Assembly (NCBI GenBank): GCA_050084985.1
Contig: JBITNC010000001.1
Location: forward strand, 62,744,001 to 62,808,000
DNA length: 64,000 nt
Direction of reading: 5' to 3'
Source of the DNA: Nageia nagi
Taxonomy: Eukaryota > Plantae > Pinophyta
The number at the start of each line of letters is the position of its first letter. Position 1 is the stretch's first letter. Position numbers and translations under genes: made by a program. The notes beneath the pieces were generated by a model. That model was not told the DNA's origin. It made no database searches and saw nothing but the letters and a program-made list of their open reading frames with translations. Positions 7,804 to 34,952 of the stretch are shown here, piece by piece.

Positions 7804-8000
7804 TTCCAACCAGAATAAAAAGAGAATTCGAAAAAGGAGCAACCTGTCTGTTTTTATTATGCTTAGGACTTACATTAGGAACGATGATTAGGTCTATGGA
7901 CCAAATGATCTATATTATGGAGTATTTCCAATCAGAATAAAAAGAGAATTCCAAAAAGGAGCAACCTCTCTGTTTTTATTATGCTTAGCACTTACATTGG
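7804..8000. repeat. Direct repeat (~75 bp x2, period 122) in the 3' flank of the peptide gene, each copy with AATAAA on both strands
   Basis: TTCCAAyCAGAATAAAAAGAGAATTCsAAAAAGGAGCAACCTsTCTGTTTTTATTATGCTTAGsACTTACATT at 7804 and 7926; present in all five gene islands. Confidence 0.85.
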
Positions 8001-8053
8001 ATAGATAGAAAGCAGACATGGCAGGGAAGAGCATATTGGTGTGAGATCAAGTT

Positions 8054-8269
8054 TTAGGGATGATTATCAACAACGAGGGGTCTCGGAGGTGGATCACCAT
8101 GGCAGGGAAGACCGGGAGGAACACGAATATGGCCATTATGGCATATAGACAGAATTTTCCTCCCTCCGGCTTCAACTCCATCACTCACTGCACTTACGTT
8201 TCCATTCCCACTGTTGAGAAGTGCCAAAACAACCACCATTATCGTCAGTTTTAGCTTAAAATTATCCAT
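8054..8269 (-). CDS. Small secreted two-Cys peptide precursor, 71 aa, copy 1 (MDNFKLKLTIMVVVLALLNSGNGNVSAVSDGVEAGGRKILSICHNGHIRVPPGLPCHGDPPPRPLVVDNHP)
   Basis: ATG at 8269 in AGAGAATGG context, ~100 nt below TATAAAA. N-terminal basic + hydrophobic signal peptide, GRKIL motif, Cys-x12-Cys. ORF intact in three copies with AATAAA downstream. Confidence 0.85.
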   Translation of the reverse strand: MDNFKLKLTIMVVVLALLNSGNGNVSAVSDGVEAGGRKILSICHNGHIRVPPGLPCHGDPPPRPLVVDNHP

Positions 8270-8370
8270 TCTCTTCTGGACCGAACTCAACTTACTTCGT
8301 TTTTTAACAAGAAACTCGAACACTGCTGTAATGTAATTCGTTAGTAATTGGAAAGTGATATGAGGCCTCA

Positions 8371-8377
8371 TTTTATA
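8371..8377 (-). promoter_or_regulatory. TATA box of peptide gene copy 1
   Basis: TATAAAA on the minus strand 102 nt upstream of the ATG; conserved at 18784-18790, 32324-32330, 50765-50771 and 59698-59704. Confidence 0.7.
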
Positions 8378-9629
8378 CTGATACCGCATACGAATGGTTA
8401 CGTTGCCAGCAAGGAATAGTAGGGAAAGTGGACAACTCAACTCCATACGACTCGTAATGTCATTTTTTTCAGGGCAACTTGTACGATAACCGTGAAAGAG
8501 ATGACCAGGTCCTGCGGACGCCGTTGAATCGCGTCCTCGGACACGTTCTCGTTTGTTAGATGTTCCCCGCATAGATGGATTCTAACCAAAAACTGACAGA
8601 TTTGAATAGAACACAAAGGAAGCACAACTAGTAAGCATCCCGCGCATGCAACTTCAATACACTTTTTTTGTCACTCCTTTTGAATCACCTCGTCATACTT
8701 GTTCTCGTTCAAGTTGGACGCGCTTTTGGGTCCAATTCTTAATACTATTGATCACCCATTTATATCAAACCTTTTCAAAAACTTAAATATAATATAATTA
8801 AATGAAAATTTATAACCATAAACCAAAAAATTTTGAAAATTAAAAATTATGTATAAGAAAAGAAGACCTTAATTTATATCAAAGAAGATTTGCTACTTCA
8901 TATTATTTTGGATTTTAGTTGTGAAAACTTTTCTACAATAAGAATGATATCATTGTTATCCTTTTATCTTAATGCTTCTAATATCATTCTTATATTGGAG
9001 CTTTGGATAAACTATGATGAGGTATAGGTTCACAGGAAGGCAGTACCTCATAAAGTCAACAATGTAAGTAATGCTAATTTACTACACGTTAGTATTCATT
9101 CTACCTAAAGCTATGGTAATATAAAGCTTATAAAAATAAGCGGTCAAACTTACTAAAAATGTAGCATTTTGAAACTATTTGAACACCATTAGAAAATCAT
9201 AATAATATTTTTTAAAGTTATCTTAATAATTTTTTCAATGTTTTTTTATTTTTTGTATCTTTTTTAATACAAGTTAAACTCGTGTTTATGCATTATAATT
9301 CTTTTCATCGATGAGTAAAATAATTGAATGTGTTACCTTGAGTCCTAAGGCAAGAATAATCTAAGAAAGAATCAATAATCAAAATTTATCATTTTAAGTA
9401 CATATAATTAAATTTTATATACCCTTGTTATAATCCTAGCATATTGTACTAATTAATTATGTTTTACATAATCAATAATGCTCAATGTAACTTGTTGAAC
9501 TCATCATATTTTACTAACAAATCCATTATATGTTATGTTATTATTACTAAATAAGAACAGAAAGGAGGAAGCAATTTTAAAATAAGTAGAATGGATCTTC
9601 AAACACCTTGTATGGAGAGTTTAATATAA

Positions 9630-9790
9630 TCTTCCAAAAGGATTACCTCATATGAGAAAGATTTACACAAAATTGATTTAATCATTGGAGAAAACCTACC
9701 AAACAAATCACCCTATAACATGCACCTAATTATTACTATTTGTATTCGTAGTGAAGAGAAATATGATTAGAAAATGGTATTTTAAAACAA
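9630..9790 (+). pseudogene. Older gypsy (CRM-like) protease-RT linker remnant
   Basis: Reads GLPHMRK..HKIDLIIGENLPNKSPY across a frameshift, resembling the LPPxRxIxHxIDLxPGxxLPNxxxY motif that precedes gypsy RT. Confidence 0.6.
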
Positions 9791-9976
9791 ATGGGTTACA
9801 TGTATTCTCAATGATATGACTAGAAAAAAGTGTTTCAAAAAAATGAAGTGCAACATTGACTAAATTGGTGGACTACTTGCAAGAGTTATACCTATATTTT
9901 GACTCGTGATGCTAGAGTATCTAACAATTTTGTGATGCATCTTAAGTGACAAAGGGTTATTTGATGCCATGGTGAG

Positions 9977-10111
9977 CTAGGGGGAGGAGATCTAGTGATT
10001 GGACATCCAGTGAGTGGAGAGCCAATAAGTGGATAGACAATGAGAGGATAACTAACGAGCAGGTAGCCAAGGAGTGGAGAGCTAACTAGTTGAGTGCTAG
10101 TGAGAGAAGAG
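9977..10111. repeat. 15-bp degenerate minisatellite (consensus ~CTAGTGAGTGGAGAG), 9 units
   Basis: Units ctagtgattggacat/ccagtgagtggagag/ccaataagtggatag etc.; also at ~20363, ~51734, ~53808 and ~61266 (10 units). Confidence 0.85.
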
Positions 10112-10160
10112 CCAAGATGAAAAGCAATGAGCATAAAGCAACGGTACTGCTAAAAGCTCT

Positions 10161-13100
10161 TGTTAAGATCCCATATCCTAATATTTACTTTTACTTATTT
10201 ATATTTTAGTTAATTTAATTATTTGCTTGTATCGACTTGTAATGTGAACCATCATATTTTCTTAGATGAGTCACCATTTGGAATGTAAACTATCAATTAG
10301 GGTAGGATGACTATATAGACTTGTAAGACACGTAAGGAGAGTATCTTGGAAAATCAATTATCTTTTAGAGTTGTAAGGAGCAAGCTCCCTAGAAGCACCC
10401 TGCAATTCCTACGTTATAAGTAAAGTTATTTTGCTATACTATTTGGTTTTTAATTTGAATATATTATTCCAATTGAATTAATTAATGCATTGCTTGTATA
10501 TGGTTATTTCATATTTCAATATTTCTTATGGTATTCAGGTACAACCCCTTTTTATTTCTACTAGATTCTTAAAAGGTGGTATCAAAGCCTTGAATTTGGC
10601 TACCTATGGGCATTTTTGTGTGGTTCCATCAAGCGAAAAAAACAAGAATTTATCTATTTTACAACTAAAACTTTGCCTAAATTTTTGCAAATTGTAAGGT
10701 TACATTGAAGTGGAACCCTATAAATCACTATTTTTTCAACTAAAACTTTGTCCATTTTTTCAAAATCTCAGGAAACCCTCAAACTTATCACCTGAAATAG
10801 AAATCTGAAATAGGTAAAAACTTTTATAGTGAATATCTTCCAAACCATGAAGACTTACCAAATTCTAAGGGTGCCCATTATGACCTTCCTCATTTTGACA
10901 TTTTTTCAACCTAATCATTTTCATATGTAGCATCGATATACTTTTTTTAACTCTCAAAAATAACAGTCACTAAAATAGTATAGTCAAGACCTAGCTTGTA
11001 TTTCAAATGGAGGGGAAACGATCTCAAGACCTCACTCTGGAAATATTAGATAATAAGGTTAAATAGCTTGAAGCTGACCTTGGTGGAGTTGACCTCAAAT
11101 ATGCTATTGAAGAGATAAATAGAAAATTATCTAAATTTTTCTAGGAAACCTTATTAGATTGGGCACTAAATATGATTCTACGAATTCAAATCTATTGGAA
11201 GTACAAAAAATAGGTCTTACAACTCTACAATAATCATCTATGCAACGATAAATATTATCATAGGGCATTCTAGGTACAAGTATTCTACAATACTTAGGAA
11301 AAATACTCATTTGCAAGCACAACAGGTGCATTTTGAGAGGTCCTCTGGCCTTTATCCTTATAAGGATAACTAAGTTGGATTTCCCTTGATTTGATAGAGA
11401 GGATCCCACTGGATGGAATTATAGAGCAAACTAATACTTTACACTGAATCAAATTCTTGAGGTTTAGAAGATCAATATATTTTCTTTTCATTTAAAGCAT
11501 GAGACCATTCAGTGGTACCAAATGTTTGAAAAGCTAATAGGAATCCTTGTTAGGGGGATTTCCTAAAACTATTTTTGGTGAGGTTTGGACCAAGTGATTT
11601 TGAGGATTTCACAAGAGCACCTACAAAACTTCAATAAATATCAATTGTGAAATAATATCATATACAATTCAAAAAGCTTGCAAATTGCATAGAGGGATTA
11701 GATTAATTATCTTTTTTTAGGAGTTGCTTCATTAGTGGGATTAAGGAAGACATCAGGGTGGAAGTCAAAATGTCCAATCCTATGCACTATAATATAGGCT
11801 ATTCAGGTTTGCTAAATTGGAAAAAGACAAATTCAATACCCCACATTGAAAGGGCTGAAAAACATTCATCAAACCTCAAGCTTCTCCTAAACTTATTCAT
11901 TTATTTCAAATTAAGCAACTCAGTAAAGAGGAAATGAATGAGTACAAAGTGAATGGTCTTTGCTATAATTATAATAAAAGATTGTATTTCCTTAATGCAG
12001 ATATATTTTGATGATTTAGAGGATGTAATTGTTATTGAGGAAGAAGGTAATGAGCTTGAAATAATTGAAAAATATGTTCTTGTAATTTCTTGTAGTACCC
12101 TTGCAAGAGTTATGACACCCCAAATAATGAAGGTTTTTCAAAAAAATTATCTCTCATCATTTTACTTAACTAAAGAAGAACACATAATTTCATTGATCCT
12201 TATGTGGATGAACATGCTAATTATTTTATATATCCTCAAAATAATTTTGAAGTAATGATTTTAAATGGAGGTAGAATTTCTTGCAAGGGGAAACATTGAA
12301 GTGTTAAGCTCAACATGGAAGATTATGCACATACAAAGTTATATGTATGTACTTCCATTGGGAGAGTATGATGTGCTCTTAATAGTTCAATAGTTATCAA
12401 TATTCAAACCTATAGTATGGGATTTCCTTGAACTGTGGATGAAATTCACTATTGCAAGACATGAATATCTAATCATTGGACTATGTGTTTGTCCACCATA
12501 GATTATTGGTTCACATCAAATGGAGAAACAATTCGAAAAAGGAAAAGAGGGAATGGTTGGAAAAGTATTTGTAATACAATGAATTGCGCATAAGGAGATG
12601 AATTAGTAGAGCTACAACAACTTTTGGCAAGTCATGAGAAGGTTTTTGAGGAACCAAAACATTTACACCCTAATTGCCCTCAAGAACACACTATATAAAT
12701 AGCTCTCGATAGTCAACCATCCAACATTTACCCTACTCCTATCCATATTTGCAGAAAGATGAAATTGAAAAATTGGTAAGGAAATATTGGATGCAGAATT
12801 ATGAGGCCAAGTTGTAGTTCTTACTCTTTGCCTATCATATTAGTCCAAAAAATGGATGGATCTTAGCAGTTATGCGTTAGACTTTCAAGTTGTCAATAAA
12901 TAACTGTGAAAGATAAATTCCCTATTTCCATCATTTATGAACTATTGGATGAGCCACATGGAGCCAAATATTTCTCAAAACTAGATTTTTATCAAGATAT
13001 CATGAGATTTGACTCTGTGAAGAGAATATTTTAAAAATAACTTTTTAGAAGTATCAAAGATATTATAAACTTTTATTAATATCATTCAGCTTTAATAATT

Positions 13101-14860
13101 CTTTTCAACATTCTAGAGTTTGATGAATCAAGTATTTCACCCTTATCTTCCTTAATTCCTTTTGATTTTCTTTAATGATATTTTGATCTATAGAAAGCAT
13201 GGCAGGATTCTTCACACGCTTATTCAAACTCTACAATTACTTTAAGAGCATCAATTATAAATAAAGAAATCCAAGTGTTCCCTTAGGCTTTTGAGATTTA
13301 ATACTTGGGCCATGTCGTTTCTAAGGATGAAGTCAAGGTAGATCCACATAAAATTATCGACATTGAAGATTGGCTTATTCCAAAACCACTGAAGGGATTC
13401 ACAAGGTTTTGGACCTAATAGGTTACTATCAAAAATTTGTGAAGAATTATGGAAAGATTGCAACTCACTCATATTGGTACTCAAAAAAAATTTCTTATAT
13501 TGGTCACCAGTTACTAAAAACTAAAGGAGCTATTATGTTCTAATCCTATTTTAACCATGTTAGATCTTTTCAAAACATTAAATTTGGCAGATTATACCTA
13601 TGCAAAGCAGATGTTGGTAATAATTTATATGCTTCAACAATGGATACCATACCTGATTGGTCAATGTTTTATCTTACAAACAAATCACCATAATCTGAAA
13701 TATTTATATGAACAACAAATCATGATAACTAAATTTCAAGAAAGGATGATCAAACTATTGGGATATGGCTATGAAATAATGTATCAAAAGGGCTTAGAGA
13801 ATGTGGTTATGATGCACATTCCACAAACTTAAGAACCCTTAGCACTTCAAGCAATCTCACTATCAAAACTCGAGTCTTAGAGAAATTGAAATAGGAATGG
13901 ATTCAATGTGATTCAGTTCAAGCATTAATTCAAAAATTCAAACTAATCCTACTAGTAATCAAAATTCTCTTTGCAGATGGATTTTTACACTTCAAAGACC
14001 ATATTGTGTTGCTATCCACTTCTTCATATGAGAAGTAATACTTTGGGAGTTGATGTTACACCATCAATAGGATACTTTAGTTTTCTCAAACCTATAAGAG
14101 TTCTCCAACATATTAGACCTAGTACTTATAAGTTGGAGTTACCAACATCTCCAAGGTTGGTCATGTATTTCATGTTTTATGTTTGATATGGGTATTAGAA
14201 TCACAAGTTCATATTCAACCAGAGTTATTGGAATGCAATGATAATGATTCTATCAACATTAAACTTGAAGCAATTTTGGACAAAACACATCCTCAACCTT
14301 TGTCATCATACTATATTCAAGATTTTGATCCAATGGTAGGTGCTAACACTAGAATATGCAACATAGGAAAATGTACATAAGCTTCAATAAGAGTTTCTAA
14401 AATTTTTGGCTTTGAGGATAAGATGTTTTCCAAGAGGGATGGCATGTTAGCATCCCATATCCTAAGATCTAGTAAGGCTTATTTATGTTTTAGTTAACTT
14501 AATTATTTTCTTGCATCAGCTTGTAATGTGAACCATCATATGTTTGAAGGTGAACCCCCAACTTGAATGTAAATCATCAATTAGGTTAGGAGGACTATAA
14601 ATACTTGTAATAAAGGTAAGGAGAGTATCTTGAAAAATATATTATCTTTTTGAGATGTAAGGAGGAAGCCCCCTCAAAGAGGCTTGCAATTCACATTGCT
14701 ATTAGTAAAGTTATTCTATTTTGTTATCTAGTTGTTAATTTGAATATATTATTCCACTTTCTTTACTTGATACATTACAATTCTATGGTTATTTTGTGTT
14801 TTAGTACATTTTATGGTATTAAGGGTAAAACCAATTTTTAGTTATGCTAATTTCCTAAAA
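10161..14860 (+). mobile_element. Decayed Reina-like gypsy element, unit 2; integrase core deleted
   Basis: 5' LTR 10161-10574 (TGTTAAGA...TCTTAAAA), PBS at 10577, same broken pol as unit 1, 3' LTR 14445-14860. Confidence 0.92.
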
Positions 14861-17800
14861 GATACAGAGTAGTGGGAGCCACATCTGAAAGAATTATGAA
14901 TAGCTAGAGAAAGAAGGAAAAAATAGATCTATGAATGGTAAAAACTATATCAAAGCACTAAATAAAATAAAAAAATAATGCAATGAAACAAGAATATAAA
15001 TTAAAATTGGTAATTTCCCATCTACCTTAAGAAGAGACAAGTGATATATCAAGGAAGAGTGAGAAGGAACAAAACTATGAGGAATATTAAAGAATTGAGG
15101 ATGATGAACTAATAGATTTAAAGGAGCTCTCGAATGCTATTATCCGCAAAGTGAGAGGAAGGAGGTAAAATAGGGAAGATCTAATGGAATTTGCAAATGC
15201 ATACTTTGATGTTGATGGTGAGTTTTAAGTTCATACTTATACCATGTAATTTATTCATTTTTTTTCAAGATATTGATGATATGAAATGGGTTTTAATAGA
15301 TGAGAAAAACTATTTTTTAGACAAAGGAGAAATTTATACGAGGAAATGGGATCGAAACTTCATTCCATTCACTAAAAAACATACAAGATACCAAATTTGG
15401 ATTAGTTATTATGCCCTTCCAATAGTGTTTTAGAAAAATAAAACCTTAAGAAAGATTTGATATATCATTTGAGAGTTATAAGGCAAGGATTTAGTATACA
15501 ATAAAAAAACTTGAGATCCAAGGAGAATCTCTCCAAGAAAAGAATATATATTTGGTTGATTATAAATGCTCAGTAGACAAAATTAATTACATTATCATCT
15601 AATTTTATTGATGCCTTAAGTAGGAGAAACCTATTATTTAAATTGATGGAAAATAAAGTTGTTGGATTTAAATTAATGTGGGAGAAGTATATGGATGATC
15701 CTAATTTTACTACAATCTACCATGCTTATCAAGATCATTGATTGATTAGGAGGATTGTTGCACATTCACCCACTGCTTTACGTTTATGGATGGAATTTTA
15801 CTCTATAGGTATATTTATCAATGAAAAGAGTTCAAATTTTGGAACACAATTTTCACATATTCTAAAAAGGATACAAGAGCTGAAAAAATATTAGAGCATA
15901 AACCGTTACGGCAGATTTACAAAATGTTATTATAATATTTTAGTGTTGTCAACTATTTTCACTATTATATGATGAAGGCTATTATTACATGATGAAGGTT
16001 ATTATAGCCCAAAATAACATTGCTATGTTTTTATAAGCTTCATATAACCATGAACTAAGGTAGAGGCTATATTAAAATGTTGTAAATTAGAGTAACTTTG
16101 TCTATTTTGTGAGTCCCAACATTTTCATTATGCCAAATAAAAAGATTATCACCCAGCACTCCTTATAATTTATCAAAAACATGACTCCACATATTTCACT
16201 CATCCTTTCTTCAAAAAGCAATAGAATATCATTTATTGTAGTACATTGTTTTCTCCTTTCTATGAGAATCATACAAATGGGTGCAATTCTTTTAATTGGT
16301 ATATTTAAGATATTATTTTACAATTTATTTAGGTTACCTTTTATCTTAAATGTTCTCAGAATTATTCAAAATATCCTTTGTATTTCTTTATATTATTATG
16401 TCTACTAACTTTATAAGAACACATCATCCACAAATAATATAGAGCTATTGTATTCAAGCTCCTACATTATTTTACCCATGGATTAAATTTTTAATTATAT
16501 CTTTTATAGGTCATATCTAAAACTTCAACATTTATGGTGAAAAGCTAATAAAGGTAAAGGTAAATATGATTAACATCCATTGGAGACCAACTAATATATG
16601 GTACGAGACAACTTGCAATAGACTATTACATATAGCATGTATGTACCCTATATAGAAGAAATAGAAGATTGACTATCTTTATGTTAATACCCTATATACT
16701 TTATAAAATTTGGTACTAAACTCATTGACTAAAACTTGTAAGACATAGATGCAATATACATTTACACTTTTTTAAACCAATTTTCGGTAAATATGAACTT
16801 TCGATTTATGTTTAACATTTATTTTCTATTTTATTAGATCATTTCTTTTAATATTAATATCATTTTATTTTTCTTTCTGATAAAAAATGAATTTAAATTA
16901 TTTATGATAATCACAACATCAAATATCGAACTTATTTTCATAAAACCTCTAGTATTTTTAAAATAATTTGAATAAGTATAATTAATTAGCTATAGTTCTC
17001 AAATTTGAAGTTAGAAAATAATAAGTAAACTATCCAAGGTAATTCTTTTATTCATTTGTAAAGAACACTCTTATGTTGATTACGAACGTATAGCCTTTTC
17101 TATGACTAAGAACTTGTGACCTTATCTTCATTTATGATTATTGACATAAATTACTTCTATGGACGAAATCATGTATATTAGGCAGCATTTCCAAGCAGCT
17201 ACACAACCTGAAATGGTCCATGGTAGACATCAAACAAGATATTCAGTAAATATGAAAGAGGAAAGAGAGAAAGAACAAAAGAATATCTCCGCGAGAAGGT
17301 ATTAGTGAACGCCTGCAAGGTAAACGATGGCCGGACGATGTGGCTTTCTTTTGCTCTACCTCTTCCTTTCCTGGCCATGACCGATTTTCTCAATTTCTAC
17401 TTTCTGCAATACAGATTTCATTTTAAGGAGTTGAAATGGGGGAAAGAGTTGAGAGTGCGCAGGGGTTGAGCGCAAAACCACACAAAATGGAACCAAAATG
17501 CTGATATCAGTTTTACGGGACTGATCTCGGATTGGTTTGTTTCCTTTCGACTGTGAATCAACAGGTTTCAATTATCATCACGAGTGGTTCCTATTTCGAA
17601 TACTTTAATAATTAACAGTAACTTTTCAATTTTATCTTTCTTATTAATGAGGGGTAAATTTAATAATTATTCTTTTAGGTCTATCGGATTAAGTGGCTTT
17701 TGCAAGCCCTTGAAGGTTTCAAATTTGACCCTAGATTCCAAGTAACTTACGAGTTTAAGTTAAACGATATAAGGTTTGTTGGGCTAATTATTAAACTTTT

Positions 17801-18466
17801 ACAAGGCAATTTGCATTACATTCAGTGCAGATGAAAAAACAAAAGTGCAATTTGCAGTACCTTCAATCTTGTTTACTTGTTTGCCTGTTCCATGCTTAAG
17901 TTCACCGGACAGGTTAATGATCTAGATGAATACATCTTAGCCGTAGTATTCACTATTTTCTTATTGTTCAATCGCTCCATATTAAAGTGTGAGCGAAAAT
18001 GGTAAAATTTGAGACCCAAACATCATTTAGTATTCATAGTTCAGCTCACATTTATTACAATTGTTCAACGTCAATTATCATATTGTGTAGCTTAACCCCA
18101 ATAATGACAGGCGGGACTGAAAATCCGAAAAGAACATTGCATGTCGAAGTTTCTTTATTACAGAACCATCAAATATGAGCCAAAGCAGATCACTTGTGTC
18201 AGTATATATCACAAATTCCAACCAGAATAAAAAGAGAATTCGAAAAAGGAGCAACCTGTCTGTTTTTATTATGCTTAGGACTTACATTAGCAACGATGAT
18301 TAGGTCTATGGACCAAATGATCTATATTATGGAGTATTTCCAATCAGAATAAAAAGAGAATTCCAAAAAAGGAGCAACCTCTCTGTTTTTATTATGCTTA
18401 GCACTTACATTAGATAGATAGAAAGCAGACATGGCAGGGAAGAGCATATTGGTGTGAGATCAAGTT

Positions 18467-18682
18467 TTAGGGATGATTATCAACAACGAGGGGTCTCGGA
18501 GGTGGATCACCATGGCAGGGAAGACCGGGAGGAACACGAATATGGCCATTATGGCATATAGACAGAATTTTCCTCCCTCCGGCTTCAACTCCATCACTCA
18601 CTGCACTTACGTTTCCATTCCCACTGTTGAGAAGTGCCAAAACAACCACCATTATCGTCAGTTTTAGCTTAAAATTATCCAT
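18467..18682 (-). CDS. Small secreted two-Cys peptide precursor, 71 aa, copy 2 (protein identical to copy 1)
   Basis: Same ORF from the MDNF start, with TATA box and 3' repeat. Confidence 0.85.
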   Translation of the reverse strand: MDNFKLKLTIMVVVLALLNSGNGNVSAVSDGVEAGGRKILSICHNGHIRVPPGLPCHGDPPPRPLVVDNHP

Positions 18683-20546
18683 TCTCTTCTGGACCGAACT
18701 CAACTTACTTCGTTTTTTAACAAGAATCTCGAACACTGCTGTAATGTAATTCGTTAGTAATTGGAAAGGGATATGAGGCCTCATTTTATACTGATACCGC
18801 ATACGAATGGTTACGTTGCTAGCAAGGAATAGTAGCGAAAGTGGACAACTCAACTCCATACGACTCGTAATGTCATTTTTTGCAGGACTCGGAAGCCGTT
18901 CACTCCTTTTGAATCGCGTCCTCGGACACGTTCTCGTTTGTTAGATGTTCCCCGCATAGATGGATTCTAACCAAAAACTGACAGATTTGAATAGAACACA
19001 AAGGAAGCACAACTAGTAAGCATCTCGCGCATGCAACTTCAATACACTTTTTTTGTCACTCCTTTTGAATCACCTCGTCATACTTGTTCTCGTTCAAGTT
19101 GCACGCGCTTTTGGGTCCAATTCTTAATACTATTGATCACCCATTTATATCAAACCTTTTCAAAAACTTAAATATAATATAATTAAATGAAAATTTATAA
19201 CCATCAACCAAAAAATTTTGAAAATTAAAAATTATGTATAAGAAAAGAAGACCTTAATTTATATCAAAGAAGATTTGGTACTTCATATTATTTTGGATTT
19301 TAGTTGTGAAAACTTTTCTACAATAAGAATGATATCATTGTTATCCTTTTATCTTAATGCTTCTAATATCATTCTTATATTGGAGCTTTGGATAAACTAT
19401 GATGAGGTATAGGTTCACAGGAAGGCAGTACCTCATAAAGTCAACAATGTAAGTAATGCTAATTTACTACACGTTAGTATTCATTCTACCTAAAGTTATG
19501 GTAATATAAAGCTTATAAAAATAAGAGGTCAAACTTACTAAAAATGTAGCATTTTGAAACTATTTGAACACCATTAGAAAATCATAATAAAATTTTTTAA
19601 AGTTATCTTAATAATTTTTTTCAATGTTTTTTTATTTTTTGTATCTTTTTTAATACAAGTTAAACTCGTGTTTATGCATTATAATTCTTTTCATCGATGA
19701 GTAAAATAATTGAATGTGTTACCTTGAGTCCTAAGGCAAGAATAATCTAAGAAAGAATCAATAATCAAAATTTATCATTTTAAGTACATATAATTAAATT
19801 TTATATACCCTTGTTATAATTCTAGCATATTGTACTAATTAATTATGTTTTACATAATCAATAATGCTCAATGTAACTTGTTGAACTCATCATATTTTAC
19901 TAACAAATCCATTATATGTTATGTTATTATTACTAAATAAGAACAAAAAGGAGGAAACAATTTTAAAATAAGTAGAATGGATCTTCAAACACCTTGTATG
20001 GAGAGTTTAATATAATCTTCCAAAAGGATTACCTCATATGAGAAAGATTTACACAAAATTGATTTAATCATTGGATAAAACCTACCAAACAAATCACCCT
20101 ATAGCATGCACCCAATTATTACTATTTGTATTCGTAGTGAAGAGAAATATGATTAGAAAATGGTATTTTAAAACAAATGGGTTACATGTATTCTCAATGA
20201 TATGACTAGAAAAAAGTGTTTCAAAAAAATGAAGTACAACATTGACTAAATTGGTGGACTACTTGCAGAGTTATACCTATATTTTGACTCGTGATGCTAG
20301 AGTATCTAACAATTTTGCTGATGCATCTTATTTGACAAAGGGTTATTTGATGCCATGGTGAGCTAGTGGGAGGAGATCTAGTGATTGGACATCCAATGAG
20401 TGGAGAGCCAATAAGTGGATAGACAATGAGAGGATAACTAATGAGCAGGTAGCCAAGGAGTGGAGAGCTAACTAGTTGAGAGCTAGTGAGAGAAGAGCCA
20501 AGATGAAAAGGAATGACCATAAAGCAACGGTACTGCTAAAAGCTCT

Positions 20547-22725
20547 TGTTAAGATCCCATATCCTAATATTTACTTTTACTTATTTATATTTTAATTAAT
20601 TTAATTATTTGCTTGTATCGACTTGTAATGTGAACCATCATATTTTCTTAGATGAGTCACCATTTGGAATGTAAACTATCAATTAGGGTAGGATGACTAT
20701 ATAGACTTGTAAGACACGTAAGGAGAGTATCTTGAAAAATCAATTATCTTTTAGAGTTGTAAGGAGCAAGCTCCCTAGAAGCATCCTGCAATTCCTATGT
20801 TATAAGTAAAGTTATTTTGCTATACTATTTGGTTTTTAATTTGAATATATTATTCCAATTGAATTAATTGATGCATTGCTTGTATATGGTTATTTCATAT
20901 TTCAATATTTCTTATGGTATTCATGGTACAACCCCTTTTTAGTTCTACTAGATTCTTAAAAGGTGGTATCAAAGCCTTGAATTTGGATACCTATGGGCAT
21001 TTTTGTGTGGTTACATCAAGTGAAAAAACAAGAATTTATCTATTTTACAACTAAAACTTTGCCTAAATTTTTGCAAATTGTAAGGTTACATTGAAGTGGA
21101 ACCCTATAAATCACTATTTTTTCAACTGAAACTTTGTCCATTTTTTCAAAATCTTAGGACAACCTCAAACTTATCACCTGAAATAGAAAATCCGAAATAG
21201 GTAAAAACTTTTGGAGTGCATATCTTCCAAACCATGAAGAATTACCAAATTCTAAGAGTGCCCATTAAGACCTTGCTCATTTTGACATTTTTTCAACGTA
21301 ATCATTTTCATATGTAGCATCGATATACTTTTTTTAACTTTCAAAAATAAAAGTCACTAAAAATAGTAAGTCAAGACCTAGCTTGTATTTCAAGTGGAGG
21401 GAAAGTGATCTCAAGACCTCACTCTAGAAATATTAGATAATAAGGTTAAATAGCTTGAAGCTAACCTTGCTGGAGTTGACCTGAAATCTACTTTTCAAGA
21501 GATAAATAGAAAATTATCTAATTTTTTCAGGAAAGCTTATTAGATTGGGCACTAAATATGATTATACGAATTCAAATCTATTGGAAGTACAAAAAATAGG
21601 TCTTACAACTCTACAATAATCATCTATGCAACAATAAATATTATCATAGGGCATACTAGGTACAAGTATTCTACAATACTTAGGGAAAAATACTCAATTG
21701 CAAGCATAACACGTGGATATGAGAGGTCCTTTGGCCTTTATCCTTATAAGGATAACTAAGTTGGATTTCCCTTGATTTGATAGAGAGGATCCCACTAGAT
21801 GGAATTATAGAGCAAAATAATATTTTACACTGAATCAAATCCTTGAAGTTTAGAAGATCAATATATTTTCTTTTCATTTAAAACATGAGACCATTCAGTG
21901 GCACCAAATATTTGAAAAAGCTAATATGAATCCTTGTTAGTGGGATTTCCTAAAACTATTTTTGGTGAGGTTTGGACCAATTGATTTTGAGGATTTCACA
22001 AGAGCACTTACAAAACTTCAATAAATATCAATTGTGAAATAATATCAGATACAATTCAAAAAGCTTGCAAATTGCATAGAGGGATTAGATTAATTATCTT
22101 TTTTTAGGAATTGCTTCATTAGTGGAATTAAGGAAAACATCAGGGTAGAAGTCAAAATGTCCAATCCTAGCACTATAATATAGGCTATTAGGTTTGCTAA
22201 ATTGGAAAAAGACAAATTTAATACCCCACATTGACAAGGGCAGAAAACATTCATCAAACCTCAAGCTTCTCCTAAACTTATTCATTTATTTCAAATTAAG
22301 CAACTCAGTAAAAAGGAAATGAATGAGTACAAAGCGAATGGTCTTTGCTATAATTATAATCAAAGATTGTATTTCCTTAATGCAGATATATTTTGATGAT
22401 TTAGAGGATGTAATTGTTATTGAGAAAGAAGGTAATGAGCTTGAAATAATTGAAAAATATGTTCTTGTAATTTCTTGTAGTACCCTTGCAAGAGTTATGA
22501 CACCCCAAATAATGAAGGTTTTTCAAAAAATTATCTCTCATCATTTTACTTAACTAAACAAGAACACATAATTTTATTGATCCTTATGTGGATGAACATG
22601 CTAATTATTTTATATATCCTCAAAATAATTTTGAAGTAATGATTTTAAATGGAGGTAGAATTTCTTGCAAGGGGAAACATTGAAGTGTTAAGCTCAACAT
22701 GGAAGATTATCACATACAAAGTTAT
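20547..22725 (+). mobile_element. 3'-truncated Reina-like element (LTR, PBS, gag, part of protease)
   Basis: LTR 20547-20961, PBS at 20964; homology to unit 1 stops at ~22725, where the sequence jumps to the flank of another LTR. Confidence 0.88.
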
Positions 22726-22767
22726 CATGGAAGATTATCATAAAACAATGATACAACTAAAGAATCT

Positions 22768-25700
22768 TGTTAAGATCTCATATCCTAATATTTACTTAAG
22801 CTTATTTATATTTTAATTAATTTAATTATTTGCTTGTATCAACTTGTAATGTAAACCAATCATATTTTCTAATATGTGTCACCATTTGGAATGTAAACTA
22901 TCAATTAGGGTAGGAGGACTATATAGACTTATAAGACATGTAAGGAGATTATCTTGGAAAATTAATTATCTTTTTGAGTTAAAAGGAGCAAGCTCCTCGA
23001 AGCACCCTACAATTCCTATGTTATAAGTAAAGTTATATTGTTATATTATTTGGTTTTTTATCTGATTATATTATTCAAATTGAATTAATTGATGCATTGC
23101 TAGTATATGGTTATTCCATATTTCAATATTTCTTATGGTATTCATGGTACAACCCATTTTTAGTTCTACTAGATTCTTAAAAGGTGGCATCAGAGCCTTG
23201 ATTTTGGCCACATATGGGCATTTTGTGTGGTTGCATCAAGTGAAAAAATAAGAATTTATCTATTTTACAACTAAAACTTTGCCTAAATGTTTGCAAATTG
23301 TAAGGTTACATTGAAGTGGAACCCTATAAATCACTATTTTTTCAACTAAAACTTTGTCCATATATTTAGAATCTCATGAAACCCTCAAACTTATCACAAG
23401 CAATAGCTAATCCAAAATAGGTAAAAACTTTTAGAGTGAATATCTTCCAAACCATGAAGAATTACCAAATTCTAAGAGTGCCTATTGAGACCTAGCTCAT
23501 TTTGATATTTTTCAGCCTAATCATTTTGATATTTAGGATTGATGTACAATTTTTAATTTTCAAAAATAACAATCACTAAAAATAGTAAGTCAATACCTAG
23601 CTTGTATTTCAAATGGAGGGAAAAAGATCTGAAGACCTCACTCTAGAAATATTAGATAATAAGGTTAAACATATTGAAGCTCACCTTGGTGGAGTTGACC
23701 CAAAATCTGCTTTTCATGAGATAAATGGAAAATTCACTAAATTTATCTAGGAAATCTTATTAAATTAGGCGCTAAGTATGATTCTACAAATTCAAATCTA
23801 TTGGAAGTAAAAACAATAAGTCTTACAACTCTACAATAATCATCTATGCAATGACAAATGTTGTCATAAATTATACTAGGAAATATTATTAAATATAGGC
23901 GTAAAATATATTAAAATCAAATCTATGGAAGTAAAAATAACAATAATTCCTTAATTATATAATCACTAATGATATAGACAAAATAATTACTTTACATAAT
24001 AAATTCTAACTTAAAGTAATATAATACTTATAGAGAAAATATACCAATTAAACACAAAGTAATATCTGAGTCCAAGACTTTTAATTCCTTTATAAGGATA
24101 ACTAAGTTGGATTTCTTTGATTTGATGAGAGAGATCCACTAATGAGATTTATAGAGGCAAAATAATACTTTACATGAATTAAATTGATTACACTTTAGAA
24201 GGTTAATATAACTTCTTTTCATTTAGAGCATGACACCATTCATGGTACCAGTGGTTTGAAAAAACTAATAAGAATCCATAAGGGGATTTGTAAAAATATT
24301 TTTAGTGAGTTATGATTAAGTGATTTTGTGGATTTCATAAGAGCATTACAAAACTTCGATAAAATCAATGTAATAATATCATAATAAGAGAATAATTGCA
24401 TAAGGATAATAATTATCTTTAGAGTGCTCATAGTGATAAAAGACTAGGGAATAAATTATCTATTATATAGCTATTAGGTTGCAAATGAAAAGACAAATTC
24501 AAACCCAGACATAAAATTAGCAAACCTAACTTTCTCAACTATTCATTTATTAAATAAGCACTTAGTAAGAGAATGAATGATTACAAGCAATGGTCTTTGC
24601 TATATAGATAAAATGTATTTCTAATGAATAATTTTGTGACTAGATGTATGTTACAGAAGGCTTCATAATAATTAAAAAATATGTTCCTCTCTTGTAGTTC
24701 CCTTGCAAGAATTATGACACCCCAAATAATGAAGGTTTTTCAAAAAATTATCTCTCATCATTTTACTTGACTAAGGAAGAACACATAATTTCATTGATCC
24801 TAGTGTGGATAAACATGCTAATTATTTTATATATCCTCAAAATAATTTTGAAGTAATGATTTTAAATGGAGCTAGAATTTCTTGCAAGGGGAAATATTGT
24901 AATGTTAAGCTCAACATGGAAGATTATCACATAAAAAGTGATATATATGTACTTCCATTGGGAGCATATGATGTGGTCTTAATAGTTCAATAGTTACAAA
25001 CATTAGAATTGATAGTATGGGACTTCCTTGAACTATGGATGAAATTCGCTATTGCAAAACATGCATATCAATTCATTGGACTATGTGTTGGTCCATCATA
25101 GATTATAAGTTCACATTAGATAGAGAAGCTAATTTGAAAAGAATACAAGGGAATGGTATGAAAATTATTTGCAATACAACAAATTGCATATAAGGGAGAT
25201 GAATTAGTAGAGCTATAACAACTTTTGGCAATTCATGAGAAGGTTTTTGAGGAACCAAAATGGTTACCCCCTAACCACCCTTAAGAACACACTATATAAC
25301 TAGTTCTTGATAGTCAACCATCCAACATTTGAACCTACTCCTATCCATATTTATAGAATGATGAAATTGGAAAATTGGCATAGGAAATGTTGAATGTAGG
25401 GATTATGAGTCCAAGTGTTAGTTCTTACTCTTTGCTTATCATATTAGTCCAAAAAATGGATGGATCTTAGTAGTTGTGCATAGACTTCTGAGTTCTCAAC
25501 AAAGTAATTGTGAAAGATAAATTCCCTATTTCCATCATTGATGAACTATTGGATGAGCTATATGGAGCCAAATATTTCTCAAAACTAGATCTGTTATCGG
25601 GTTATCATCAGATTTGACTCCATGAAGAGGATATTTTAAAAATAACTTTTTAGAAGTATGAAAGATATTAAAAAATTTTAGTAATATCATTCAGCTTTAA

Positions 25701-28464
25701 TAATTCTCATTCAACATTTTAGAGTTTGATGAATCAAGTATTTTGCCCTTATCTTCCTTAATTCCTTTTGATTTTCTTTAATGATATTTTGATCTATAGA
25801 AAGGTATGGCAGGATCTCTTCCCACACTTAGATCAAACTCTATAATTACTTTAAGAGATCAATTATAAATAAAGAAATTCAAGTGTTCCTTTAGCATTTT
25901 GAGATTTAATACTTGGGGCATGTCATTTCTAAGGATGAAGTCAAGGTAGATCCACAAAAAATTGTCAACATTCAAGATTGGCTTATTCCAAAATCATTGA
26001 AAGGATTTGCAAGCATTTTAGCCCTAATAGGTTACTATAAAAAATTTGTAAAGAATTATGGAAAGATTACAACTCCACTCACATTGTTACTAAAAAAAAG
26101 ATTTCTTTAATTGGTAACTAATTACTGAAGAATATTTTTATAAACTAAAGGAGGTAATATGTTCTAATCCTATTTTAACCATACTAGATTTTTCCAAAAC
26201 ATTATCATTAAGAGTGATGCCTCTAGAGTAGAATCAAGTTTTATTTTGATGTAAGAGGGAAAATACTTGATTTTCACTAACAAGGCATTATCAGGATAAA
26301 ATTTGGTGAGATATACCTATGCAAGGAAGATGTGTGTAATAATTTATATGGTTCAACAATGGATACCATACCTGATTGGTTGATATTTTATCTTACGAAA
26401 AAATCACCATAGTTTGAAATATTTTATAAAATAATGAATCATGATAAATAAATTTCAATAAAGGATGACCAAACTATTGGGATATGGCTATGAAATAATG
26501 TATCAAAAGGGTTTATAGAATGTGGTTATGGATGCACATTCCTAGAAATTTAAGGAACCCTTAGCACTTCAAGCAATCTCATGATCAATTATCAAGTGGC
26601 TAGAGAAATAGAAATAGGAATGGATTCAATGTGATTCAATTCAAGCATTAATTCAACAAATTCAAACTAATCCTACTAGCAAATCAAAATTCTCTTTGCA
26701 AGATGGATTTTTACACTTCAAAGACCATATTGCATTGCTATCCACTTTTTCATACTAAAAAGTAATACTTTGGGAATTGTATGTTGCACCATCAATAGGA
26801 TACTTTAGGTTTCTCAAATCCTATAAAAGAATTGCTTGATATTTTTATTGGGATAAAATTAAACATAACATCAAAAAATTTATTGACAAATATTATTTTT
26901 TCAATGGTAGAAAGGTAGAATAATTGGCACTCTTGGTTTACTTCAGCCCTTACCTATCCCAAGCCACACTTGTACTTATATTTTGATAAACTTCATTGAA
27001 TGTCTCCATAAGTCCTAAGGTAAATATATTATTTTGATGGTAGTTGAATAGTTTTCTAAATATGCACACCTTTGCTCTTTAGCACATCCATTTAAAGCTA
27101 TCAATGTGTCCTAACTTTTTATTTATAATATTTTTAAGCTTCATTATATGCCCTCTACCATAGTTAGTGATCGATATCCTATGTTCACTAGCAAATTTTG
27201 TTAAGAATTTTTCAAGCTACAGGGAACTCAAGTCATAACGAGTTTAACCTATCACCTCCATATTGATGGATAGTCTAAAGTTATTAAAAATTGCTTTGAA
27301 ACTTATTTGTGTTGTTTTGTATCAATCAAATTAGTTCATTAGATAAAATGGCTTCCTCTGATAGAATGGTGGTATAACATTTCATACCATACAACTATTT
27401 AGATGACACCATATGAAGTATTATATAGTAAGGTACAATCCATAAGGGAAGCATATGTACTAGGTAACATGAAGGTCTGAGTATTTGACACTCATTTATA
27501 TACTCTAGAAGATATTGTTCATCTTTTTCAAGAGAATTTAAGGACTGCTCAACATAGTATGAAGCAACAAGTTGAACAAAATTTTATAGAACTTGATTTT
27601 ATAGAAGGTGATATGATCTTTTTGCACCTTCAAATGTATATACATAAATCCTTGAACATTAATGATCCTTAGGAAATGGATATAAATTTTATATCCCTTA
27701 AAAAGTTCTCAAACATATTAGACCTACTACTTATAAGTCAGAGTTACCAATGTCCTCCAAGGTTCATCATGTATTTCATATTTTATGTTTGATAAAGTTA
27801 TTAGGGTCACAAGTTCAAATTCAACCAAAGTTACTAGATTGCACTGATAATGGTTCTATTAAGATTAAATCTGAAGCAATTTTAGATAAACACATCCTCA
27901 ACCTTTGTCATCATACTATAATTAAGATTTTGATCCAATGGTAAGTGCTAACACTTGAATATGCAACCTAGGAAAATATACATAATCTTCAATAAGAGTT
28001 TCTAAATTTTTAGCTTTGAGGATAAGCTATTTTCCAAGAGGAATGGCATGCTAGCATCCCATATCCTAGGATTTAGTTAGGCTTATTTATGTTTTAGTTA
28101 ACTTAATTATTTTCTTGCATTGGTTTGCAAGGTGAACTATCATATGTTGTAAGGTGAACCCTCATTTTGAATGTAAATCATCAATTAGATCAGGAGGACT
28201 ATAAATAATTGTAATAAAGGTAAGGAGTGTATCTTGAAAAATATATTATCTTTTTGAGTTGTAAGGAGGAATCCCCCTCAAAGAGGCTTGCAATTCGCAT
28301 TGCAATCAGTAAAGTTATTTTATTTTATTATCAAGTTGTTAATTTGAATATATTATTCCAATTTCTTTACTTGATACATTATGATTCTATGTTTATTTTG
28401 TATTTTAGTACATTTTATGGTATTAAGTGTAAAACCAATTTTTAGTTATGCTAATTTCTTAAAA
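22768..28464 (+). mobile_element. Full-length (~5.7 kb) but decayed Reina-like gypsy element, subtype B, retaining integrase
   Basis: 5' LTR 22768-23182 and PBS TGGCATCAGAGC at 23185. RT, full RNase H, integrase remnants 26830-27700 (GLLQPLPIP, SKYAHL, IVSDR, YHL.IDG.S) and chromodomain. 3' LTR 28049-28464. Short LTRs, size and chromodomain fit the Reina lineage. Confidence 0.92.
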
Positions 28465-30879
28465 GATACAAAGTAGTGGGAGCTACATCTAAACGAATCA
28501 CGAATAGTGAGAGAAAGAAGAAAAAAATAGACGTATGAATGGTAAAAACTATATCAAAGCATTGAATAGAATAAAAATTAATGTAATGAAATAAGAATAT
28601 AAATTAAAAGTAGTAATTCCTATCTACCTTAAGAAGAGATAGGTGATAGATCAAGGAAGAGTGACAAGGAACAGAACTATGAGGAATATTAAAGAGTAGA
28701 GGATGATGAACTAATAGATTTAAAGGAGCTCTCAAATGCTATTATCTACAAAATGAGAGGAAGGAGGCCAAATAGGGAAGATATAATGGAATTTGCAAAA
28801 TGCATACTTTGATGTTGATGGTGAGTTTAAGTTCATACTTATACCTTGTAATATACTCATTTTTTTCAAGATATTGATGATAAAAATGGGTTTTAAAAGA
28901 GGAGAAAAACAATTTTTTTAGCCAAGGAGAAATTTATATGAGAAAATGGGATTGAAACTTCAATCCATTCACTAAAAAACATACAAACTACCCAATTTGG
29001 ATTAGTTATTATGCCTTTCCAATAGTGTTTTAGAAAAATAAAACCTTAAGAAAGAATTGAAATATCATTTAAGAGTTATAAGGCAATGATTTAGTATACA
29101 ATAAAAAAAACTTGAGATCCAAGGAGAATCTCTCCAAGAAAAGAATATATATTTGGTTGAATATAAATGCTAGAAAATAATTTTGTTGGATTTAAATTAA
29201 TGTGGGAGAAGTATATGGATGATCCTAATTTTACTACAATCAACCATGCTTATGAAGATCATTGAGTGATTGGGAGCATTGTTGCACATTCTCCCATTGC
29301 TTTACGTTTATGGATGGAATTTTACTTTATAAGTATATTTATCAATGAAAAGATTTCAAATTTTGAAACACAATTTTGACATATTTTAAAAAGGATACAA
29401 AGAGCCAAAAAAATATTAGAGCATAAATTGTTATGGTAAATTTACAAAATGTTATTATAATATTTTGTTGTTGTCAACTATTTTCACTATTATATGATGA
29501 AGGTTATTATTATATGATGAAGGTTATTATTACGTGATGAAGATTATTATAGCCCAAAATAGCATTGCTATGTTTTTATAAACTTTGTATAACCATTAAC
29601 TTATGTAGAGGCTATAATAAAATGTTGTAAATTAGAGTAACTTTGTTGATTTTATGAGTCCTCACCTTTTCATTGTGCTAAATTAAAAGATTATGACCCA
29701 ACACTTCCTTATACTTTATCAAAAACATGACTCCACATATTTTACTCATCCTTTCTTATAAAAGCAATAGAATATCATTTATTGTAGTACATGTTTTCCT
29801 CCTTTCTATGAGAATCATACAAATGGGTGCAATTATTTTAATTGGTATATTTAAGATATATATTTTACATTTTATTTAAGTTACCTTTTATCTTAAGTGT
29901 TCCTTAGAATTATAAAAAATATAGTTTATATTTCTTTATATTATTATGTCTACTCACTTTTGTAAGATCACATCATCCACAAATAATTTAGAGTTATTGT
30001 ATTCAAGCTCCCACATTATTTTACCCCATGGATTAAATTTTTAATTATATCTTCTACTAGGTTAATTTCCAAAACTTCAACCTTTATGGTGAAAAGGTAA
30101 TAAAGGTAAAGGTAAATATGATTAACATCCATTGGAGACCAACTGGTCTATGGGATAGACAACTTGCAGTAGGCTATTATATATAGCATGTATGACCCTA
30201 TATAGAAGAAATAGAAGATTGACTATCCTTATGTTAATACCCTGTATACTTTATAAAATTTGGTACTAAACTCATTGACAAAAACTAGCTAAGAGATAGA
30301 TGCAATATACATTTACACATTTTTAAACCAATTACCATAAATATGAACTTTCGATTTATGTTTAACATTATTTTCTATTTTATTAGATCATTTCTTTTAA
30401 TATTAATATCATTTTATTTTTCTTTCTAATAAAAAATGAATTATAAACTTATTTATGATAATTACAACATCAAATATCGAACTTATTTTAATAAAACCTC
30501 TAATATTTTTAAAATAATTTGAATAAGTAAAAAGTATAATTAATTTGCTATAGTTCTCAAATTTTAAATTAGAAAATAATAAGTAAACTATCCAAGGTAA
30601 TTCTTTTATTCATTTGAAAGAACACTCTTATGTTGATTATGAACGTATAGCCTTTTCTATGATTAAGAACTTTGTGACCTTATCTTCATTTATGATTATT
30701 GACATAAATTACTTCTATGGACCAAATCATATATATTAGGCAGCATTTCGAAGCAGCTACACAACCTGAAATGTCCATGGTAGACATCAAACAAGATATT
30801 AGTAAAGATAAAAGAGGAAAGAGAGAAACAGAAGAATACCTCCGCGAGAAGGTATTAGTGAACGCTTGCAAGGTAAACT

Positions 30880-31023
30880 ATGGCCGTACGACGTGGCTTT
30901 CTCGTGCTCTACCTCATCCTTTTTTGGCCATGGCCGAAGTTTCTCAATTTCTACTTTCTGCAATACAGATTTCATTTTAAGGAGTTGAAAAAGGGGAAAG
31001 AGTTGAGAGCGCGTAGGGGTTGA
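30880..31023 (+). CDS. Candidate 47-aa ORF with signal-peptide-like N-terminus (MAVRRGFLVLYLILFWPWPKFLNFYFLQYRFHFKELKKGKELRARRG)
   Basis: Manual translation; same length at 58482-58625, truncated in units 1, 2 and 4. Confidence 0.25.
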   Translation: MAVRRGFLVLYLILFWPWPKFLNFYFLQYRFHFKELKKGKELRARRG

Positions 31024-32006
31024 GCGCAAACCCATACAAAATGGAACCAAAATGCTGATGTCAGTTTTCCGGGACTGATCTCGGATTGGTTTGTTTCGTT
31101 TCGACTGTGAAACGAGACGTTTCAATTATCATCACGAGTGGATCCTATTTTGAATACTTTAATAATTAACAGTAACTTTTCAATTTATCTTTCTTATTAA
31201 TGAGGGGTAAATTTAATAATTATTCTTTTAGGTCTAACAGATAAAGTGGCTTCTGCAAGCCCTTGAAGGTTTCAAATTTGACCCTAGATTCCAAGTAACT
31301 TATTAATTTAAGTTAAACGATATAAGGTTTGCTGGGCTAATTTTTAAACTTTTACAAGGCAATTTACATTACATTCAGTGCAGATGAAAAAACAACAGTG
31401 CAATTTGCAGTACATTCAGTCTTGTTTAGTTGTTTACCTGTTCCATGCTTAATATCACGGGACAGGTTAATGATCTAGATGAATACATCTTAGCTGTAGT
31501 ATTCACTATTTTCTTATTGTTGAATCGCTCCATGCGAAAATGGTAAAATTTGAGACCCAAACATCATTTAGTATTCATAGTTCAGCTCACATTTATTACT
31601 ATTGTTCAACATCAATCATCATATTGTGTAGCTTAACCCTAATATTAACAGATGAAATTGAAAATCCGAAAAGAACGTTGCATGTCGAAGTTTCTTTATT
31701 ACAGCACCATCAAATATGAGCCAAAGCAGATCACTTGTGTCAGTATATATCACAAATTCCAACCAGAATAAAAAGAGAATTCGAAAAAGGAGCAACCTGT
31801 CTGTTTTTATTATGCTCAGGACTTACATTAGGAATGATGATTAGGTCTATAGACCAAATGATATATATTATGGAGTATTTCCAATCAGAATAAAAAGAGA
31901 ATTCCAAAAAGTAGCAACCTGTCTGTTTTTATTATGCTTAGCACTTACATTAGATAGATAGAAAGCAGACATGACAGGGAAGAGCATATTGGTGTGAGAT
32001 CAAGTT

Positions 32007-32222
32007 TTAGGGATGATTATCAACAACGAGGGGTCTCGGAGGTGGATCACCATGGCAGGGAAGACCGGGAGGAACACGAATATGGCCATTATGGCATATA
32101 GAAAGAATTTTCCTCCCTCCGACTTCAACTCCATCACTCACTGCACTTACGTTTCCATTCCCACTGTTGAGAAGTGCCAAAACAACCACCATTATCGTCA
32201 GTTTGAGCTTAAAATTATCCAT
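32007..32222 (-). CDS. Small secreted two-Cys peptide precursor, 71 aa, copy 3 (A34V)
   Basis: Intact ORF; three substitutions versus copy 1 (two synonymous Leu codons and A34V), none in the last 31 codons. Confidence 0.85.
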   Translation of the reverse strand: MDNFKLKLTIMVVVLALLNSGNGNVSAVSDGVEVGGRKILSICHNGHIRVPPGLPCHGDPPPRPLVVDNHP

Positions 32223-34905: not shown

Positions 34906-34952
34906 TTATCATCCCATTCTACATAATACCCATATACACATTCATGGTATGA

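Follow-up and report, generated by a model that had tools for sequence, protein, structure and literature searches.

Legume NCRs, DEFLs and the Brassicaceae ARACINs carry 4-8 cysteines, and in NCR and DEFL genes the signal-peptide exon is usually followed by an intron. RALF23, GOLVEN1 and the PME pro-regions are propeptides processed by S1P/SBT6.1. The CTNIP/SCREW peptides are ligands of the receptor kinase HSL3/NUT; the CTNIP family is defined in PMC9191895, and CTNIP4, QRGPVRGSGRNGCTNIPRGSGRCHN, has a Cys58-Cys68 loop at its extreme C-terminus (PMC13585564). Here, these systems are compared with a gene for a 71-amino-acid (aa) protein that is present in tandem copies in a stretch of 64,000 nt from Nageia nagi contig JBITNC010000001.1 (the window; all coordinates are positions in the window). 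We hold with moderate confidence that it is a young, lineage-restricted, protein-coding gene.

An earlier note on this DNA had described an intact 71-aa open reading frame (ORF), one per repeat unit, in three copies. The ORF list and tblastn agree on these three, the second protein being identical to the first and the third differing by A34V, and two further copies, both outside the interval considered in that note (8054-32222), were found. The copies of the coding sequence (CDS) are as follows.

8054..8269, minus strand: CDS of copy 1, 71 aa, stop included (ORF list and tblastn)
18467..18682, minus strand: CDS of copy 2, protein exactly that of copy 1 (ORF list and tblastn)
32007..32222, minus strand: CDS of copy 3, with 3 nt changes, two of them synonymous and one leading to A34V (tblastn)
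50454..50663, minus strand: copy 4, a pseudogene that carries an in-frame stop and C43S and has lost one codon (3 bp), 7 % diverged, as are its flanks
59575..59600 (~59580), minus strand: copy 5, a deletion scar in which 207 bp (equivalent to 8046-8252) are lost and the CDS is gone after codon 5

The protein of copy 1 is MDNFKLKLTIMVVVLALLNSGNGNVSAVSDGVEAGGRKILSICHNGHIRVPPGLPCHGDPPPRPLVVDNHP (71 residues). Copy 5 still has the promoter and the 3' untranslated region (UTR). With three intact and two dead copies within the window, birth and loss of copies are under way.

The gene has a TATA promoter of its own, from which an unspliced mRNA of ~0.4-0.5 kb is made, with two alternative poly(A) sites. 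The features of the transcription unit in copy 1 are listed below.

7806..8345, minus strand: transcription unit (5'UTR, CDS and 3'UTR), with RNA contigs over 7806-8312
8371..8377, minus strand: TATA box, TATAAAA, ~60 nt upstream of the most 5' base covered by RNA contigs
7975..7980, minus strand: proximal AATAAA, with RNA depth falling from 407 to 75 just downstream (7928-7957)
7853..7858, minus strand: distal AATAAA, within a 122-bp tandem duplication of the 3'UTR, with the RNA contig end at 7806

Both the TATA box and the good start context (AGAATGG) reported earlier are present. TATAAAA is kept in all five copies (at 18784-18790, 32324-32330, 50765-50771 and 59698-59704 in the others), as are both AATAAA signals, the second of which originated in the duplication of the 3'UTR (7804-7876 and 7926-7998). 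No ATG is found between the RNA contig end at 8312 and the start codon, so that the 71-codon frame opens at the first ATG within the RNA-covered region.

An index of public sequencing runs lists 20 runs from 19 studies that contain part of 7950-8550. Six of them, from six studies, are on record as RNA (four leaf-litter metatranscriptomes, one from seawater and one from gut), and a further five are guessed to be RNA. Contigs from the runs were mapped on 6800-9200. Run X6, which carries the same organism label as the best DNA run, yielded contigs at 7806-7957 (depth 75), 7928-8203 (depth 407) and 8174-8312 (depth 269), run X8 yielded a single contig at 8089-8302, and run X16, a leaf-litter metatranscriptome, a single contig at 7898-8266. 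These three runs have zero coverage in 6800-7805 and 8313-9200, and the DNA run X2 covers 6800-9065, flanks included. The flanks therefore serve as a silent control, and the pattern of the RNA contigs fits a discrete RNA of that length. The earlier description of a single exon is upheld, as the RNA contigs are confined to 7806-8312 and no splice joints are reported in them across this interval. A GTAAGT (8192-8197) just after the signal-peptide region was considered as a splice donor and rejected, because the RNA contigs pass straight through it without a joint. The drop in depth past the first AATAAA, together with a contig end ~47 nt past the second, fits two poly(A) sites on the minus strand. 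The strand of the RNA was deduced from the positions of the TATA box and the AATAAA signals; AATAAA is absent from the plus strand near 8300.

Two peculiarities of the RNA data were noted. One X6 contig, of 169 nt, runs from 8174 to 8312 and then through 8174-8203 again, so that 8312 is linked back to 8174 in a k-mer cycle; chimeric reads from a very deep transcript are the probable cause, and the contig may otherwise represent a tandem or circular RNA form. In addition, leaf-litter, seawater and gut metatranscriptomes and air metagenomes (runs X15-X20) each contain the same share, ~28 %, of the sampled words of the stretch. This would be explained by a very widespread source plant (pollen, litter, fodder) or by leakage of this abundant transcript between co-sequenced libraries.

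The N-terminus of the protein has a plausible layout for a cleavable signal peptide, as the earlier note had suggested.

8189..8269, minus strand: predicted signal peptide, codons 1-27, cleavage at VSA|V, or at GNG|N (hydropathy and AlphaFold2 helix)

An n-region with two lysines (residues 1-7, K5 and K7) is followed by a hydrophobic core of 11 residues (residues 8-18, LTIMVVVLALL), which has Kyte-Doolittle window means of up to 3.6 and is too short for a membrane anchor. After the core comes the polar stretch NSGNGNVSA. Under the -3/-1 rule, from which the cleavage site was derived, these positions would be occupied by V and A ahead of V28, or by G and G ahead of N24. AlphaFold2, used without an alignment, predicts a helix at residues 3-19 and no other (pLDDT ~79). 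The C-terminal region has the composition given previously, with two cysteines (C-x12-C), 4 His and, within the last 31 residues, 8 Pro. The second Cys is followed by a Pro-rich tail of 15 residues.

A product with this layout would enter the secretory pathway via the predicted signal peptide of 23-27 residues, and a Pro/His-rich peptide of ~44-48 residues, with two cysteines able to close a 14-residue loop, would be released. A second cut at RKIL|S, giving a 31-mer, may follow, though this is a guess. Judged by analogy, the most likely role is that of an apoplastic defence or signalling peptide, which is what general knowledge of such precursors would lead one to expect. At the C-terminus, Asp-Asn|His-Pro is similar to the Asx-His-Val tails on which asparaginyl endopeptidase ligases act, and head-to-tail cyclisation is conceivable. 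The more specific proposals made previously are speculative: that S1P cuts out a 31-mer, that the cysteines form a disulfide loop, that the peptide acts as a ligand or in defence, and that amplification served dosage; Pro hydroxylation and metal binding are likewise conjecture.

Of the families introduced above, CTNIP/SCREW had been put forward as an analogy. The similarities are a precursor of ~70 aa, an N-terminal signal peptide (predicted here), two C-terminal cysteines and a His after the second Cys (CHG here, CHN in CTNIP4). However, the loop is C-x12-C here and C-x9-C in CTNIP4, the sequence C-H-N-G-H-I stands in place of C-T-N-I-P and the TNIP motif is absent, and 15 residues follow the second Cys where CTNIP4 ends after two. 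No sequence similarity to CTNIP/SCREW was found in any search made. Lacking the motif and having a longer loop and a 15-residue tail, the protein is not a CTNIP/SCREW member, and the analogy, which fails on motif, loop length and C-terminal end, was dropped.

The resemblance to S1P/SBT6.1 propeptides consists of an R-x-x-L sequence, RKIL, located between the predicted signal peptide and the Cys/Pro-rich C-terminus, and extends to these four residues only. The chance expectation is ~0.2 per such protein, and the motif is of little weight because a pattern of four residues arises about once in five such proteins by chance. The protein is not a RALF, as there is no Pfam RALF match, there are two cysteines rather than four and the YISY motif is absent. 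With the NCR, DEFL and ARACIN genes it shares small size, a (here predicted) signal peptide, tandem birth-and-death arrays, a narrow taxonomic range and, on the basis of one variant, a signal-peptide half that is better conserved than the mature half. It differs from them in having two cysteines and an unspliced transcript, and it matches none of their Pfam models. For CLE, PSK and EPF, and for CEP, IDA, PIP, RGF and PSY, no Pfam match, no homologue and, on inspection, no motif was found. The motifs looked for included RxxPxGPxPxHN, the DY-sulfation motif and SGPSxxGxGH. The absence of CLE, CEP, IDA, PIP, RGF, PSK, PSY, RALF and CTNIP motifs, as stated in the earlier note, thus stands as far as Pfam and inspection go.

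The description of the protein as unclassified is borne out as far as the libraries reach. Pfam gave 0 families at E values up to 10, a PDB sequence search gave no match and neither the ESM Atlas nor Rfam contained a relative. Neither a protein-pattern scan nor an exact 31-mer scan of the JGI metagenome contigs gave a match, and a literature search with the peptide string found nothing. An exhaustive phmmer search of 1.84 billion cluster representatives returned one close variant, P0001 (93 % identity), and ten long repeat proteins, which are considered below. The variant differs from the gene by a silent change at S41 and by I48L, R63K, L65F and V66F, with H47R in addition in P0001, and essentially the same variant is found in the contig from run X16. 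The signal-peptide half is invariant in it.

Four things taken together make the case that the frame is coding: the promoter and poly(A) signals, the RNA coverage, an N-terminus like that of a signal peptide, and a CDS that has diverged little. Between copies 1 and 3, divergence is 7.8 % over the unit, 4.6 % in the UTRs, 13 % in the promoter island and 1.4 % (3/216) in the CDS, where two changes are synonymous and one is a conservative replacement (pN 0.006, pS 0.039, pN/pS 0.16). If the CDS changed at the unit rate, one replacement or fewer would have a Poisson probability of 5e-5, and if it changed at the UTR rate, of 0.005. The pseudogene (copy 4) has collected 15 substitutions over these 216 nt (7 %), which equals the rate of its flanks. 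This frame obtained an ESM 'recognition' score of 2361, against 1067 for the frame on the opposite strand; in calibration, a level of 2361 was reached by 91 % of real families and by 9 % of shuffles.

Several observations weigh against this interpretation. The difference in divergence between CDS and UTR is, taken alone, marginal (Fisher p = 0.07), and local gene conversion could imitate the constraint signal. An ATG ORF of at least 71 codons is held by 5 % of shuffled transcripts, so length alone is a weak argument for coding. The RNA contigs carry no strand information, which makes the strand a deduction from the signals, and the status of X6 and X8 as RNA is a guess. P0001 is the sole true relative found, hence there is no deep conservation, and its 4-5 replacements and one silent change all fall in codons 41-66 (pN/pS ~1.3). 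Judged from the sequence, these changes look neutral, or diversifying, in the putative mature part, and they fit poorly with a strictly conserved ligand. AlphaFold2 gives no confident fold for the C-terminal part (pLDDT ~50), and translation and secretion are both predictions from the sequence.

These observations are shared in part with the main rival, a transcribed proto-gene without function, or a non-coding RNA. Here, a promoter-like, GC-richer island amid repeat-rich DNA would drive an abundant short RNA, the 71-codon frame would be fortuitous or too young for function, and the copies would be intact because they are recent duplicates. That ORFs of equal length occur in shuffles, that copies 1 and 2 are just 1.4 % apart, that two of the five copies are already dead, that the variant allele has a high pN/pS and that relatives are absent from the libraries searched are all as this explanation predicts. 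Moreover, the island at 8054-8581 has a GC content of 0.46 (0.29-0.36 around it), and several frames are open in it on both strands, which makes an open frame cheap there. However, copy 3 has a single amino acid change in a unit that has diverged by 7.8 %, where the broken copy 4 has accumulated many changes over the same length; the frame starts at the first AUG, in a good context, and has the textbook n-h-c layout of a signal peptide; and the language model finds this frame, and not the opposite one, protein-like. The RNA itself has no unusual structure, with 0 Rfam matches and a fold z-score of -0.04 when a structured RNA or miRNA precursor was sought. We regard a proto-gene or non-coding RNA as possible but on the unlikely side.

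Upstream of the CDS, in the segment 8346-8581 (GC content 0.46), the peptide frame continues without a stop past the TATA box, for 130-187 codons; this is seen in three copies and in a database variant, P0012, despite indels. The upstream-extended frame of 172 aa was considered as the true protein and rejected, as its upstream part is the most divergent and indel-rich (13-16 %) and lies above the TATA box and all RNA contigs. The sole match of the extended frame is P0012, which is on the same contig as P0001 and ends ahead of the peptide ORF. The open upstream frame is taken to be a compositional accident and not coding.

The favoured explanation, a young protein-coding gene, retains part of the earlier interpretation, namely an expressed, tandemly repeated, unclassified gene with a signal-peptide-like N-terminus; the CTNIP/SCREW analogy failed, and the argument from an S1P site found no support. 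The stronger proposition is a new plant secreted-peptide family of recent origin in transposon-rich DNA, tandem-amplified and abundantly expressed, whose product is a single-disulfide, Pro/His-rich apoplastic signal, antimicrobial or metal-binding factor, and this we consider doubtful. If the peptide is made and secreted, a lineage-specific family would be added to the plant repertoire of small secreted peptides, and the locus would show cleanly how a very young gene can gain copies when a block made up of a retroelement and a spacer is duplicated in tandem, with intact, decaying and deleted copies all present in one array. Plant genomes contain many comparable orphan candidates. The present value of this one is that of a well-documented candidate, with a promoter, RNA, a plausible signal peptide and some constraint.

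Self-comparison of the window revealed that all of it is built on one repeated unit, in direct orientation and head to tail, with a period of 10.4-13.5 kb. Positions 1-8473 are 98.6 % identical to 10430-18886, a third unit is ~92 % identical with a period of ~13.5 kb, and rearranged units occupy 43-64 kb. Tandem amplification amid retroelements, as originally described, is thereby confirmed. The retroelement features are listed below.

10161..10576, plus strand: long terminal repeat (LTR) 'A', 416 bp, TGTTAAGATCCC...TTAAAAGG; LTR with primer-binding site (PBS), 10161..10588
14432..14861, plus strand: polypurine tract (PPT) and LTR 'B' (LTR B, 14445-14861), the 3' end of the gypsy element
14862..20546, no strand: spacer 'R', between LTR B and the next LTR A, containing gene copy 2; equivalents at 4449-10160 and 28466-32678
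44016-49131, plus strand: Ty1/copia element inserted in the spacer of one unit, separating 42983-44015 from 49132-51556

LTR A is directly followed by a tRNA-Met-type PBS, TGGTATCAAAGC. The LTR A plus PBS feature recurs at 20547-20975 and again, with PBS sites, at 149, 23185, 52338, 54410, 61882 and 62194; the window has eight such sites against 2.9 expected at the mismatch level used. The interior of the Ty3/gypsy element is degenerate, with an RT_RNaseH domain at 13518-13829 and a Tf2-type integrase SH3 domain at 3619-3924 detected by Pfam on the plus strand. LTRs A and B share the start TGTTA..ATCCC and are 77 % identical. The LTRs differ by 23 % but the units by 1.4-8 %, so the old element stood next to the spacer before amplification of the block began. 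Judging from these sequences, either the gypsy element would be much older than the tandem amplification or two related families would have recombined to form it.

The gene lies 3.6 kb past the end of LTR B and 1.9 kb ahead of the next LTR A, in the spacer of ~5.7 kb, for which no similarity to retroelement proteins was found. It was considered as part of the Ty3/gypsy element and rejected, as it is located outside the 5' LTR/PBS to PPT/3' LTR interval and outside the LTRs. A location within a single long LTR of 6.5 kb was also rejected, as the PPT and an LTR start (TGTTAG...) directly follow pol and the 416-bp LTR ends at the PBS. Sitting between old gypsy LTRs, the gene would have been multiplied as the element-plus-spacer unit was copied head to tail, for which unequal crossing-over between units is the simplest mechanism. 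The single orientation of all copies, and window ends that fall inside units, indicate tandem duplication via unequal exchange and not independent insertions. The junction that truncates unit 3 (32678/32679) is matched letter for letter in an independent DNA run, and is therefore not an assembly artefact.

Within the spacer, a degenerate inverted repeat surrounds the gene in copy 1.

5400..5673, no strand: left arm of the inverted repeat, degenerate, with alignment scores 9-12 standard deviations above shuffles
9074..9312, no strand: right arm, 70-78 % complementary to the left arm

These arms (~240-270 nt) enclose a segment of 3.4 kb that contains the gene, in a layout like that of a Mutator-like element (MULE) or Pack-MULE. 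The gene could thus be cargo of an old non-autonomous DNA transposon of this type, with the ORF captured or born in the element and its copy number reflecting element and array, not host selection; this would be compatible with either a functional gene or a proto-gene. Arms of this length, complementarity and score would fit such an origin, as would the truncated unit (42983...51556), which corresponds roughly to the segment between the arms. However, no target-site duplication is recognisable at the ends of the arms, all arm sequence in the window belongs to array units and no copy was seen elsewhere, a TATA box of the gene's own lies ~700 bp inward from the arm, and protein searches did not find a parent gene for a captured fragment. 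Orphan and de novo genes and Pack-MULE cargo are similar to this gene in having lineage-only homologues, retroelement surroundings and degenerate inverted repeats and in being transcribed. This gene differs from them in its signs of constraint between intact copies (pN/pS 0.16) and in having a full set of promoter and poly(A) signals that are its own, and neither a parent gene nor any sign of mobility was found. An origin as transposon cargo is improbable on this evidence.

The ten repeat proteins returned by phmmer suggested that the gene might be a relic of a Tectonin-type beta-propeller repeat protein. Six of the ten, P0002 (E = 3e-13) and five further Tectonin proteins confirmed by Pfam, align to residues 31-71, gap-free to the blades (consensus roughly AAGRQLFQLHxNGxIWRxTGxPCxGxxCPGWQxLDNNP). 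However, the relationship is very improbable and largely refuted as an artefact of summed repeat scores (<=11 bits per repeat), since single repeats score -3 to 11 bits and the E value sums 7-12 of them, P0007-9 and P0011 are unrelated repeat proteins aligned to other parts of the query, a lone blade of 40 residues cannot fold as a propeller, and no second blade is present upstream, where the frame diverges fastest (13-16 %). Summed repeat scores are a classic source of false positives in a library of 1.8 billion proteins.

Within the rearranged part of the array, the LTRs of the Ty1/copia element (~340 bp; 44091-44431 and 48802-49140) are 93 % identical, an exact PBS, TGGTATCAGAGC, is located at 44436, and gag_pre-integrs, rve, Pol_BBD and retroviral SH3 domains were detected by Pfam. 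The gene copy adjoining this insertion is the pseudogene at 50454-50663. Units are joined at arbitrary internal sites (22729-22739, 51553-52418 and 55177-55272). The interior is cut at 22729 and restarts ~30 nt ahead of an LTR A, and 10656 is joined to 8583. Such arbitrary junctions indicate that the array was reshaped after amplification by illegitimate recombination and deletion. Past unit 3, the array is interrupted by ~10.3 kb of unrelated sequence without a notable ORF (32679-42982). This contains direct repeats of 340 bp (36833-37176 and 41411-41749) that are 82 % identical and are possibly the LTRs of another old element.

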